NCBI RefSeq assembly: GCF_000009045.1 | Contig: NC_000964.3 | Span: 1,302,001 to 1,366,000 of the forward strand | DNA length: 64,000 bases | Reading direction: 5' to 3' | Source: Bacillus subtilis subsp. subtilis str. 168 | GTDB lineage: Bacteria; Bacillota; Bacilli; Bacillales; Bacillaceae | Shown here: piece after piece, positions 15,415-23,055 of the stretch | Layout of the letters: each line of letters starts with the position of its first letter | How positions within the stretch are numbered: position 1 is the stretch's first letter | Translations under genes and position numbers: made by a program | Notes under the pieces: model-generated | What the model was told of the DNA's origin: nothing | The model's input: only the letters and a program-made list of their open reading frames with translations | Database searches by the model: none

Positions 15415-15489
15415 ATTCAGACCCTCCGTGAACTTCAGTTTAACACATTTATCCATATTACGGTGATAGATGATATGAGCTTTTCGTCC

Positions 15490-15512
15490 TACGAATGCCA
15501 CCTATTTATGAA
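15490..15512 (+). promoter_or_regulatory. Copy of the PBSX late-promoter motif upstream of xlyB
   Basis: TACGAATGCCACCTATTTATGAA matches 22991-23013 at 18 of 23 positions. Confidence 0.65.
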
Positions 15513-15534
15513 AAAAGAAAAGGAGAGATGATAG

Positions 15535-19847: not shown

Positions 19848-20027
19848 ATGTATCCGATCCAAATCGTTTTTAGTGAAAATCCCATAGATCAGCGCCATCT
19901 CGGACAATCCGGCGGCACCATTTCGTTTACCGCATGCGGCCTTCCGGTGTTTCACTTTGAAACGCAGGAACAGTTTCAAGCATACATGATGTTAAAAGGA
20001 GAAGCGGCGTACAATGAAAAACGATAA
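19848..20027 (+). CDS. yjzJ: Small PBSX early protein, 59 aa
   Basis: AGGAG SD, ATG at 19848, overlaps the xkdB start. Confidence 0.7.
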   Translation: MYPIQIVFSENPIDQRHLGQSGGTISFTACGLPVFHFETQEQFQAYMMLKGEAAYNEKR

Positions 20028-20850
20028 AAGCTATCCTTTTCCGACGTATTCAGGGTTGTTGAATTCAGAACATTATGACAAAATTGGCCCGGCGTTATGG
20101 CTGTTTCTCTGGTTTATCAGCTCAACAACAAAAGAAATCGAAAAAGACGGCGTAAGCTGGGGCATCGTACTCGGCCATAAGCCGTTAAAAGCGAGAGAAA
20201 TGGCGGCAGTCTTCGGCGTAAGTGAAAAAACCGTCAGAAGATGGCTGGAGCTTCTCGAAAACCATGATTACATAAAGGCCGTCCGTGCGCCATACGGACT
20301 GATGATTTCGGTCAAGCATTCAAAAAAATTCAGCTTCAGATCGGACAATACTGTACACGGGAGTCTAAAAGAACGGCCATTTTCGCCGCAGACACCGGAC
20401 ACAAACGACCGTACAGATATAGATAAAACAAACAAATATACTGCTGCTGATGATGCAGTGGATCACATTGCGAAGCGGTTTACACAATTACGGTCGGCTC
20501 AAGAAGGACGCACCGTGTATCCTTCCTCAAGAGATTATCAAGCCATCGCCCGCATTGTTGCCATCGGCGTTCCTGTCACGCAAACAATCAAATGGCTTGA
20601 AGAATGCTTTCAGGCTTTTGAAAACCGGCGGACCGCCGCTTCTGAAACAATCAAGGCTTTTCGCTACTGCTCGAAATTCATTGAAGATCGATTTTTCGCG
20701 CAGCAAGCCAAAAAGAATGCCGCAATTCAGCATGAGAGGATGAAAAAACATGACAAAACGAACAATCGAACAGATTTTGGACGAGCTGAGAAGAGGGAGA
20801 CGTCCATTACTGGCGGACAAACCGGCCGAATCAGACGCAAGCAGGTATGA
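20014..20850 (+). CDS. xkdB: Phage replication-initiator-like winged-HTH protein
   Basis: N-terminal HTH (MAAVFGVSEKTVRRWLELLE); precedes a DnaC-like ATPase. Confidence 0.8.
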   Translation: MKNDKSYPFPTYSGLLNSEHYDKIGPALWLFLWFISSTTKEIEKDGVSWGIVLGHKPLKAREMAAVFGVSEKTVRRWLELLENHDYIKAVRAPYGLMISVKHSKKFSFRSDNTVHGSLKERPFSPQTPDTNDRTDIDKTNKYTAADDAVDHIAKRFTQLRSAQEGRTVYPSSRDYQAIARIVAIGVPVTQTIKWLEECFQAFENRRTAASETIKAFRYCSKFIEDRFFAQQAKKNAAIQHERMKKHDKTNNRTDFGRAEKRETSITGGQTGRIRRKQV

Positions 20851-21550
20851 TTGCCTGCGCTGCAAGGATCAGGGAGGTTATCTCGTCAGGCAGAATGGCC
20901 TGGAAGTCTGGACGATGTGCAGCTGCATGGCAGAACGAAAAGTGAAGCGGCTGCTGGGTGCAAGTGAGATTACCCACGCTTTCAGACAGCTCGGCTTCAA
21001 GGAATTCCGCACGGAGGGAAAGCCGCAGGCCATAAAAGACGCATTTGAGTGTACAAAAGAGTATGTTGCCGATTATGAACAAATCAAGGATTGCCGAAAA
21101 AACAGCATTGCCCTTTTAGGACAGCCCGGATCAGGGAAAACACACCTTTTGACCGCCGCAGCCAACGAATTAATGAGAACATGCTATGTGCCTGTCATTT
21201 ATTTTCCGTTCGTGGAAGGCTTTACTGATCTGAAAAATGATTTTGCCCTATTAGAAGCGAAGCTGAACCGGATGAAGCAGGCGGATGTGCTGTTCATTGA
21301 TGATCTGTTTAAACCGGTTAACGGCAAACCCCGCGCTACAGATTGGCAATTAGAGCAAATGTATTCGGTACTCAACTATCGCTACTTAAATCATAAACCG
21401 ATTTTGCTTTCGAGCGAGCTGACAATTGAAGGACTTGTACGGGTCGATGAAGCGCTCGGCACGAGAATCTATGAGATGTGCAGTGACTATTTAGTGATTA
21501 TCAAAGGAGCAGCCTACGAGCTTAACCATAGATTGGAGGGCGTCAGATAA
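20750..21550 (+). CDS. xkdC: DnaC/IstB-like ATPase (helicase-loader type)
   Basis: CxxC...CxC, Walker A GQPGSGKT, Walker B LFIDDL. Confidence 0.88.
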   Translation: MTKRTIEQILDELRRGRRPLLADKPAESDASRYDCLRCKDQGGYLVRQNGLEVWTMCSCMAERKVKRLLGASEITHAFRQLGFKEFRTEGKPQAIKDAFECTKEYVADYEQIKDCRKNSIALLGQPGSGKTHLLTAAANELMRTCYVPVIYFPFVEGFTDLKNDFALLEAKLNRMKQADVLFIDDLFKPVNGKPRATDWQLEQMYSVLNYRYLNHKPILLSSELTIEGLVRVDEALGTRIYEMCSDYLVIIKGAAYELNHRLEGVR

Positions 21551-21805: not shown

Positions 21806-22152
21806 AAGTGTTGGCAAAGACAAAACAGGCAGAGAAAAGCCCTGCGCCGTGGCGTGCTGTCCCGTGCGGGGATACGAAACCGATCTATATTTATTCAGCT
21901 TACAGTGAAGAAGAAAAAGAAAGATTTCCGTACTCAAACGGGCGGCTGATTGCAGCTGTATTTGACCTCAGCTCTTATTCGCAAAAAAGCAATGCCTCTT
22001 TGATGGCCGCTGCGCCTGAATTGCTGGAAGCGTCTAAAGCAGCACTTGATTTTCTGAAAGGGAATTCTATTCATTCAAAGGAGCGTATCATTCAGCTATT
22101 AGAAAAAGCTGAAGCAAGCGCTGCACCGAAAAGGGGAGGAAATAAAACATGA
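21802..22152 (+). CDS. xkdD: PBSX early protein of unknown function
   Basis: 116 aa, NA.L.AAAPELLEA motif common in phage proteins. Confidence 0.8.
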   Translation: MKVLAKTKQAEKSPAPWRAVPCGDTKPIYIYSAYSEEEKERFPYSNGRLIAAVFDLSSYSQKSNASLMAAAPELLEASKAALDFLKGNSIHSKERIIQLLEKAEASAAPKRGGNKT

Positions 22153-22355
22153 TTCATCCGAAAAAACTGCTGCATATCGATTCCGTCACGCTTAAGAGCC
22201 AGCTGGAGGACGGGAAAATCCGTGTCATTATTGTGGACGGCATCAAGCAAGAAGCATGGATCACAGAAGCGCCAGAGCATGGAAAAACGCTCGTCGAAAC
22301 AAGAAAGGGCGATCTTGCTCGTGTGGAATTTGAAATCGGCTACAAATTAAATTAA
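22149..22355 (+). CDS. xtrA: XtrA/YqaO-family small phage protein
   Basis: 68 aa, ATGA-coupled to xkdD, GGGAGG SD. Confidence 0.82.
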   Translation: MIHPKKLLHIDSVTLKSQLEDGKIRVIIVDGIKQEAWITEAPEHGKTLVETRKGDLARVEFEIGYKLN

Positions 22356-22390
22356 AGCGAAAACAGAATACGTCCAAGACGGAAAGCCTG

Positions 22391-22446
22391 CGGACACTGA
22401 TCAACTGCACAGCATTTGTGCGTTGATTGGTGTCCGTTTTTTATTT
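22391..22446 (+). terminator. Long terminator-like hairpin between xtrA and xpf
   Basis: 15-bp outer stem (two G-U pairs) plus 5-bp inner stem, then TTTTTTATTT. Confidence 0.7.
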
Positions 22447-22470
22447 GCCAAAAATGAGGAGGATCATAGA

Positions 22471-22980
22471 ATGCAAGACTTACTATTTGAATATAAACGC
22501 ACGCTCAAACAAACAAGAATACAATATAAACCGCTCGCTGAGGCAGATGAATCCGTGCTCTCAGCTGAAGAGCTGAAGGATAAAAAAATCATCAGAAATA
22601 TGATTACTGATCTTGAATATGTAACAGAATGGCTTGAAAAAGGAAGGCAGCCCGGCATCAGACGGGCGATTGACCGGCGTGATGTTTACCAGCGGCTGAT
22701 GATCAAGGACCCGAGAATCATCGAATCATTTTCCAGCGCTATGATGTTTGAGCCGGACGGACAGGTATCAGAAGAAGACAGAGATAGAATTCGAGAAGCA
22801 TTAGCCCTGTTAACGGACAGAGAAAAGGAAATGTTTTTGCTGCATAAGGTAGAATGTTTTTCTTATGAACGGATCGCCGATCTTCTCGGCGTAAAAAAAT
22901 CGACAGTGCAAACGACGATTAAACGGGCGAGTTTAAAGATGCAAAGACAGCAGGAAGAAATGAATCGATCACTTGCCTGA
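22471..22980 (+). CDS. xpf: Sigma-70-like late transcription factor, 169 aa
   Basis: C-terminal sigma region 4 HTH (LTDREKEMF...SYERIADLLGVKKSTVQ); GAGGAGG SD. Confidence 0.9.
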   Translation: MQDLLFEYKRTLKQTRIQYKPLAEADESVLSAEELKDKKIIRNMITDLEYVTEWLEKGRQPGIRRAIDRRDVYQRLMIKDPRIIESFSSAMMFEPDGQVSEEDRDRIREALALLTDREKEMFLLHKVECFSYERIADLLGVKKSTVQTTIKRASLKMQRQQEEMNRSLA

Positions 22981-22990
22981 AAGCTTGTCA

Positions 22991-23013
22991 TACGTTTGCC
23001 ACCTATAAGTGAA
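22991..23013 (+). promoter_or_regulatory. Probable Xpf-dependent late promoter
   Basis: Directly after xpf and before the terminase genes; motif duplicated upstream of xlyB. Confidence 0.6.
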
Positions 23014-23027
23014 TAGAGCATGACACT

Positions 23028-23055
23028 AAGCGGCTGGCTGATCAGCCGCTTTTAT
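23028..23055 (+). terminator. Hairpin in the late-operon leader
   Basis: AAGCGGCTG-GCTGAT-CAGCCGCTT then TTAT; short U tract. Confidence 0.45.

Follow-up and report, generated by a model that had tools for sequence, protein, structure and literature searches.

The xtrA-xpf hairpin

The window, by which we mean the whole stretch of 64,000 nucleotides that was analysed (Bacillus subtilis subsp. subtilis str. 168, contig NC_000964.3, positions 1,302,001 to 1,366,000 of the forward strand), is the PBSX region, with the genes xre, xkdB, xkdC, ykzK, xkdD, xtrA, xpf and xtmA. Among defective prophages PBSX is the textbook case, and its host is the main model organism of the Gram-positive bacteria; it is known neither to replicate nor to package its own DNA. 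A DnaD-like xkdB and a DnaC-like xkdC are nevertheless retained (window 20014-21550). In the literature that we searched, we found no explanation of how the early operon hands over to the late sigma factor. The features that lie at this handover are collected in Table 1.

Table 1. Features between xtrA and xpf, in window coordinates
Feature	Position	Strand	Description
xtrA	22149..22355	+	ORF, 68 aa; Pfam PF17356; final gene of early operon
A/U-rich 5' flank AAUAC	22367..22371	+	abuts helix P1; family consensus AAUAA or AAUAU
Leader hairpin (putative antiterminator)	22372..22395	+	weak, 24 nt; folding alone -4.5 kcal/mol
P1	22372-22375 (GTCC) pairs with 22392-22395 (GGAC)	+	leader hairpin
P2	22381-22382 pairs with 22387-22388 (GG/CC)	+	inside P1
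Leader loops	5' internal 22376-22380; apical 22383-22386; 3' internal 22389-22391	+	from the fold
Intrinsic terminator stem-loop	22390..22437	+	about 21 bp, one bulge; RNAfold -31.6 kcal/mol for the hairpin alone
Terminator U tract TTTTTTATTT	22437..22446	+	from the sequence; kept in all family members
xpf RBS GAGGAGG	22456-22462	+	from the sequence
xpf	22471-22980	+	ATG at 22471; sigma-70 region 4 type late activator, LtrA class

A reading of the sequence alone had described, ahead of xpf, a hairpin of about 20 bp with a U tract that ends 24 nt before the start codon, and on this sequence and fold agree. The stem is rich in G+C and is followed directly on its 3' side by UUUUUUAUUU (22437-22446), as in an intrinsic terminator; the tract is made up of a T run at 22437-22442, then an A, then TTT up to 22446, and the 24-nt gap between it and the ATG includes the ribosome-binding site. 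The 126-nt region folds with z = -4.0 relative to dinucleotide shuffles, and 0 of the 200 shuffles equal it. The same reading held that an upstream GTCC could compete with the terminator's own GTCC for GGAC. Both the upstream GTCC and the GGAC were located where it had placed them; the GUCC in the 3' arm of the terminator occupies 22432-22435, and the first four core pairs of the terminator use 22392-22395, that is, the 3' strand of P1.

Its further statement, that no obvious separate promoter is seen there, stands as well: between the T tract and the ATG there is no room for one. The sole sigma-A-like match consists of TTGCCA at 22445 and, after 16 nt, a TAGAAT ending at 22472. It overlaps both the ribosome-binding site and the start codon, initiation from it would fall inside xpf, and it is missing from the B. 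pumilus homologue. A promoter within or past the hairpin was rejected, and none downstream of it can serve xpf.

Distribution of the element

The 26-mer that begins at 22372 has, by exact matching, exactly three perfect copies in this genome: one in PBSX, one in skin, directly upstream of yqaQ, and one in a prophage remnant near yjcN. If up to 3 mismatches are allowed, 140 copies are found, spread over 50 of the 91 genomes that represent the family and over 47 of the 48 that belong to the genus; a reversed-pattern control gave 0 occurrences, so that chance is far from accounting for the element. When phage records are searched by BLAST, phi105 matches over only the 81 nt of the element (88% identity), and PBP180, a PBSX-like element of B. 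pumilus, matches the element and the beginning of xpf; the flanks around the element are otherwise unrelated in both.

The copies have a common layout, in which variable upstream DNA gives way to an A/T-rich pentamer, an invariant leader of about 20 nt, the terminator, the T tract and a ribosome-binding site. Among 67 copies, the weights of the pentamer at positions -5 to -1 are A.66, A.75, T.73, A.76 and A.58. In the terminator, the lower stem is conserved, whereas the apical stem is wholly different in sequence between copies and yet paired. A covariance model (R1) was built from 53 copies and comprises the terminator and two tiny local hairpins, without P1; with this model, relatives turn up in 47 of the 151 genomes that represent the order, belonging to 34 of its 84 genera, and also in other orders of Bacilli. 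The hairpin ahead of xpf is thus one copy of a widespread phage RNA family.

Several other copies and neighbours were seen along the way. A fourth, decayed copy in this genome, at 2752018-2752100 of its own coordinates (minus strand), consists only of the terminator half and a truncated yqaQ-like start; it adjoins host-like genes and looks like the scar of a prophage. In a second class of copies, conservation extends about 30 nt further into the flank on either side, and the 3' arm is GUGGCCGC, which yields either an A-G mismatch or a compensated GGCCGC. These copies (for example L073 1305-1592, L043 6021-6106 and L014 2700-2787, with similar loci in other Bacillus genomes) lie 2.5-4.7 kb downstream of a normal copy, and several of them are decaying. 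They occur in islands that hold an LXG toxin/immunity pair, a Rap- or AimR-like TPR protein, and ParB-like and methylase genes. The copies of this class are spanned by an open frame, but single-base indels separate their flanks from copy to copy, and we therefore reject a coding role and take them to be non-coding. One distant prophage has a RAGATH-18 RNA (L103 1284-1361; Rfam RF03064, 74 bits) about 140 nt ahead of the element.

The alternative fold

Because the 3' strand of P1 is at the same time the base of the terminator, P1 and the terminator are mutually exclusive. Enforcing P1 in folding costs about 12 kcal/mol relative to the full terminator and leaves an upper stem that is detached from the U tract. 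Given this cost, the terminator should win unaided, in agreement with the Term-seq values of the paralogues (see below), and any factor that favours P1 would need to act during transcription.

Within Bacillus the leader is nearly invariant, and covariation must therefore come from distant relatives: the Bacillus-only alignment is 98.4% paired, with 1 pair that shows double changes, which is too little variation for pair counts. In an alignment of the element, the terminator shows double-sided changes at 7 of 18 consensus pairs. As MAFFT misregisters the length-variable leaders of distant relatives, P1 and P2 were assessed by unconstrained folding and by listing their variants. Each leader, up to and including the four nucleotides that are shared with the terminator, was folded without constraint and compared with shuffled leaders. 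All four shared nucleotides pair upstream in 84% of the 87 members, versus 6% of the shuffles; the P1 helix is absent from the search model by which the relatives were found.

P1 occurs as GUCC/GGAC, GUUC/GGAC, GUCU/GGAC, GUUC/GGGC, GUCU/GGGC and GCCU/GGGC, the last at three loci, in one of which the 3' arm of the terminator is altered too. P2, which encloses an A-rich loop of 4-5 nt, occurs in at least 12 Watson-Crick versions among the relatives: GG/CC, CG/CG, CCAG/CUGG, CAAG/CUUG, CCGG/CCGG, CACG/CGUG, CGG/CCG, CCG/CGG, GCA/UGC, GCG/CGC, CUAG/CUAG and CCGA/UCGG, although these relatives share ancestry and the counts are not counts of independent events. The GUCC:GGAC fold with a GGAAA-type loop that had been proposed from the sequence is thus retained in distant relatives by compensatory changes, and a covariation check, which had been suggested for leaders from Bacillus prophages, turns up compensatory variants of P1 and of P2 alike when leaders from many genera are compared. 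As in an attenuator, some nucleotides of the terminator stem also take part in an alternative helix, and this helix is kept by covariation. A different pairing, of AAGACGGA with UCCGUUUU of the terminator, was rejected: its G is missing in many copies, and position 9 varies without compensation.

A leader hairpin of this kind might in principle be stabilised by a small molecule or by temperature, without any protein. Its layout is that of a classical expression platform, and a computational riboswitch screen names the skin copy among hundreds of candidates (PMC4448311). The hairpin, however, is only about 24 nt long and matches no family in Rfam, and the internal loops and P2 are wholly different between subtypes (AAGAC/UGC, UA/A, GA/A), so that there is no conserved pocket for a ligand. 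We find a direct sensor hardly credible.

Termination and transcription in vivo

In the Term-seq supplement of Mandell et al. 2021 (PMC8060035), the copy in the prophage remnant terminates at 95.6% and the skin copy at 75% in the wild type. Both of these paralogues, whose leader and lower stem are identical to those of the PBSX copy, thus terminate within the U tract in uninduced cells. The 3' end in the prophage remnant, at 1265473 (+) of the genome's own coordinates, is very strong, with a coverage of 786 (PMC8060035). The coordinates of the PBSX copy have no entry in these tables, which we attribute to the repression of its operon. In one mutant-strain column of the same study, which concerns NusA and NusG, the termination value of the prophage-remnant copy is 44.9% instead of 95.6%, despite the strong stem and perfect U tract of that copy; at the skin copy there is no such fall in that column (75% to 92%).

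In uninduced cultures, the xpf reads per kb amount to about 40% of the xtrA reads. After replication arrest, transposon insertions show an enrichment of about 2 to 2.7-fold in each of the genes from yjzJ to xpf, but none in xtmA (Tn-seq, PMC9836290). Polarity on xpf would produce this pattern if transcripts reached the gene through the hairpin from the early promoter, and the pattern is thus indirect evidence; xpf probably shares a transcript with the early operon. Among these insertions, those in xkdB and xkdC protect cells after replication arrest, which polarity may explain.

These measurements bring us to another account of the hairpin, namely a plain insulating terminator with a constant leak, which would do no more than close the early operon or upstream cargo genes, whose fixed read-through of 5-25% supplies Xpf and whose leader has been kept by descent, or by recombination between mosaic phages, with no switch involved. 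Some leak does exist, since the paralogues terminate at 75-96% in uninduced cells, and a constant 5-25% could suffice; the proportion of xpf to xtrA reads is compatible with it, as is the position of the element at a module boundary of mosaic phages, between unrelated flanks. What such an account does not provide for is the leader. P1 exists only when the base of the terminator is not formed, and so has no role in a simple terminator, and yet it is retained together with P2 by compensatory changes across many genera. Moreover, 26 unpaired or weakly paired nucleotides are invariant in Bacillus, while the apical stem of the terminator varies freely. We therefore consider a constantly leaking terminator unlikely.

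The strong 3' end in the prophage remnant would also suit a small regulatory RNA, either derived from a 3' UTR or independently transcribed, of which the invariant 5' stretch would be the seed and the terminator the 3' end. An invariant 5' segment followed by a terminator does resemble seed-bearing small RNAs, and the A/T-rich box ahead of the motif has a weak resemblance to a -10 element. There is, however, no conserved -35 or extended -10 upstream of the motif, and a start 7 nt past the box would remove the 5' strand of P1, which covaries. Sites in the genome that are complementary to the invariant leader occur at the level of chance (12-13-mers; the best is a 13-mer, of which about 1 is expected), and a survey of small RNAs reports none in PBSX (PMC2965217). 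A small RNA is, in our judgement, very improbable.

Genes upstream of the element

The sequence-only reading had singled out XtrA, encoded immediately upstream, as the obvious candidate for a protein that acts on the hairpin. XtrA belongs to Pfam PF17356, the XtrA/YqaO family, with 93.3 bits (cut-off 29.7; E 8e-27), and across our sets of loci it does lie upstream of the element, on the same strand, nearly everywhere. For 95 of the 140 Bacillus copies, a member of the family is found within 8 kb upstream on the same strand, and in 49 of these cases the gene directly adjoins the element. XtrA or its relative DUF3954 occupies such a position at 24 of 27 order-level loci, and one or the other is upstream on 113 of the 116 IMG/VR contigs that have at least 6 kb of upstream DNA. 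Neither in the order-level upstream regions nor on the viral contigs was a member of the XtrA family found on the opposite strand or downstream of the element. Among 14 XtrA loci without the 26-mer, an R1 match follows within 2.5 kb downstream in 8. The distance between XtrA and the element has a median of about 0.7 kb and is often below 30 nt, and XtrA is the nearest conserved gene; in phi105, the XtrA-family gene lies 5 kb upstream of the element, with unrelated genes in between.

The subtype of the RNA, moreover, mostly tracks the subfamily of XtrA. XtrA proteins of the PEHGKT type occur with GUCC-AAGAC-GG leaders, those of the AVEHGxT type with the CG/CG or AGG/CCU leader variants, those of the LPxHGETK-THQGKVKR type with GUUC-UA-CCAG-CCAA-CUGG leaders, and DUF3954 proteins with leaders of the CGG/CCG type. 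The exceptions are a few viral contigs that pair a B-like XtrA with an A-type leader. It should be borne in mind that XtrA and the element are genetically linked, so that co-inheritance alone would yield much of this association. Different XtrA-leader pairs do, however, coexist within one host genus (labels g14, g49, g51 and g1), which argues against a host factor as the source of specificity.

As to its structure, XtrA is predicted to form a four-stranded beta meander (pLDDT 82 with a broader alignment; 66 in the first model). Comparison of the model with solved structures by Foldseek and by a wide VIA search gave no convincing match (best Z 3.1), and when PDB sequences were searched with a profile, no hit fell below E 0.08. 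A protein atlas links XtrA only to DUF3954 and DUF2292. Lacking a convincing match, the fold neither supports nor contradicts RNA binding.

XtrA has to be weighed against other factors that might operate a real switch: another early phage protein, such as the DnaD-like XkdB family, XkdD, YkzK or the small basic protein encoded just after the element in phages of the phi105 type, or a host RNA-binding protein or elongation factor. When same-strand ORFs in the 8 kb upstream of 54 loci are clustered, only two families are nearly universal, XtrA (45 loci) and the DnaD-like XkdB family (46), so that XkdB is on a par with XtrA, which itself has no recognisable RNA-binding fold. The reduced termination at the prophage-remnant copy in one mutant strain of the NusA/NusG study would suit a host factor, and the very basic ORF with its conserved C-terminal motif 3' of the element in phi105-like loci would suit a different phage protein. 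On the other side, the RNA subtype varies among phages of one host genus, following the XtrA subfamily, which speaks against a host factor; in PBSX the stretch from the element to xpf holds no small basic ORF; and it is XtrA that is the nearest conserved gene. A switch that is worked by a factor other than XtrA seems to us rather unlikely.

The basic ORFs deserve a short description of their own. They encode 42-70 aa with a conserved C-terminal motif ELMG..R..Y.R..GA.RQK and have no Pfam match. Phi105-like phages of many genera carry them after the element and ahead of the late activator (examples are L001 3097-3273, L003 1628-1759, L097 1298-1483 and L112 1609-1782).

Late activators downstream of the element

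Xpf matches Pfam Sigma70_r4_2 (E 7e-15) and phrog_1190 (E 1e-54). It is a small helix-turn-helix protein of the sigma-70 region 4 kind, encoded just upstream of terS (xpf is followed by xtmA), like the LtrA class of the Ltr superfamily of late activators, which comprises RinA, ArpU, LtrA, LtrB and LtrC (Quiles-Puchalt et al. 2013, PMC3753634). At about 27 of 33 diverse loci, the element is followed, as the first sizeable gene, by a phage transcription regulator, whether an Xpf-like sigma factor (phrog_1190), a DUF1492/ArpU-like protein (phrog_36, phrog_248) or a YqaQ-like protein (phrog_1058). The regulators that follow the element belong to the Ltr late activators of PMC3753634.

Beyond xpf, a late-promoter box at 22987-23018 recurs ahead of xlyB at 15486-15517. 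A terminator-like hairpin with a U tract (approximately 23031-23055) lies between this box and xtmA, and late transcripts would carry it or need to pass it. This hairpin may be the xpf terminator, of the kind described for ltr genes in PMC3753634, but in PBSX it comes after the promoter box.

Proposed mechanism

We think it quite likely that the element is a real antiterminator/terminator switch that depends on a trans-acting factor, and, given such a switch, XtrA has a good chance of being that factor. As a whole, we lean towards a switch between the early operon and the late-activator gene in which the terminator acts by default unless a phage protein, most plausibly XtrA, overrides it, although the switch does not require this protein to be XtrA. 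Taken by itself, the identification of XtrA as the antiterminator is tentative. The terminator, termination in vivo at the identical paralogues, the covarying alternative hairpin and the conserved order of xtrA, element and late activator are observed; regulated read-through, a protein that brings it about and XtrA as that protein are the parts of this model that we infer.

According to the model, a polymerase leaving xtrA would make the weak 24-nt hairpin, with P1 around P2 and its A-rich loop. Without help the terminator would prevail, and most early transcripts would stop 24 nt ahead of xpf; in a lysogen, termination by default would shield the cell from leaky expression of suicidal late genes. 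After induction, an early phage protein would grip the small hairpin, possibly together with the conserved GGACAC-UGAU 3' of it. With the hairpin held, the terminator stem would be shorter and parted from its U tract, so that polymerase would read through into xpf, and Xpf would then activate the late promoter. If the protein is, as is most likely, XtrA, then synthesis of the late activator would wait until XtrA has accumulated. Such an element probably times the early-to-late switch of many phages of the Bacillus type.

Extended to all relatives, the model has XtrA and DUF3954 as a new family of small phage RNA-binding antiterminators, each subfamily with its own 24-nt hairpin overlapping a terminator, and the pair as the timer between early and late expression in a large share of the temperate phages and phage-derived elements of Bacilli; this broader proposal we put forward as a possibility, with some reserve. 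As the RNA is identical in PBSX, skin and the prophage remnant, the induction of one element could open the late-activator genes of the others.

The comparison provides a model for whose test a single gene and a single RNA suffice, defines an RNA family across many genera and suggests a function for PF17356 and PF13128. If the model is true, it adds a third temporal cascade of phages by antitermination, beside those of lambda N and Q, explains how the suicidal late genes are silenced in lysogens, and offers compact, orthogonal protein-RNA switch pairs for engineering.

Comparison with known systems

The sequence-only reading had suggested that this could be an undescribed system, and had proposed a search of Rfam. 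In Rfam 15, nothing matches the element in the window at E up to 10, nor in 20 diverse loci at E up to 1. Full-text searches of the literature, by the letters of the motif and by xtrA, yqaO, yqaQ, DUF3954 and PBSX together with antitermination, found no description of it. The suggestion thus holds over the Rfam families and text searches that we covered, and the RNA family is apparently undescribed.

With respect to the late activators, the Ltr paper (PMC3753634) describes the regulators that would be gated here, in the same position upstream of terS. The terminator that it describes, however, is downstream of the ltr gene, and it describes neither an upstream switch nor XtrA.

Functionally, the closest parallels are lambda N with nut and lambda Q with qut, in that there, as is proposed here, an early product permits read-through of a terminator for the next temporal class and the terminator shields the lysogen. 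With lambda N and Q, though, loading takes place at nut or qut sites, at a distance from the terminators that are overcome, and the polymerase is processively resistant from then on. Here it is one specific terminator that the conserved RNA overlaps, and this suggests a local mechanism in which structures compete, unlike that of N and Q. Nor is there a module of the Q/qut type, which has a conserved promoter, a promoter-proximal pause and a Q-binding element just ahead of the terminator, as near the motif we find no conserved -35 and only a weak A/T-rich box, and the covariation of P1 means that transcripts must start upstream of the motif.

In architecture, the element most resembles the RAT sequences that are bound by proteins of the BglG kind (LicT, SacY, SacT and GlcT in B. 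subtilis). There too, a short, weak and imperfect hairpin, interrupted by internal loops, has a few nucleotides in common with the 5' arm of a strong intrinsic terminator; and there, as is proposed here, termination is the default and a protein must hold the hairpin in order for read-through to occur. The sequence and the loop geometry of the present RNA are nevertheless unrelated to RAT, and the candidate protein is phage-encoded, about 65 aa long, and would gate a late activator rather than genes of sugar catabolism. No CAT_RBD or PRD domain was found by Pfam in the PBSX early genes that were scanned, and XtrA matches PF17356 only.

The element may finally be set beside TRAP, PyrR, HutP and GlpP of B. 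subtilis, which are small RNA-binding proteins that select between leader structures at a terminator, but whose RNA targets, folds and signals are different, and none of which is encoded by a phage. The kind of mechanism is thus a known one, represented by RAT and LicT and, functionally, by lambda N and Q, while the RNA and its candidate protein are unrelated to those of the known systems.
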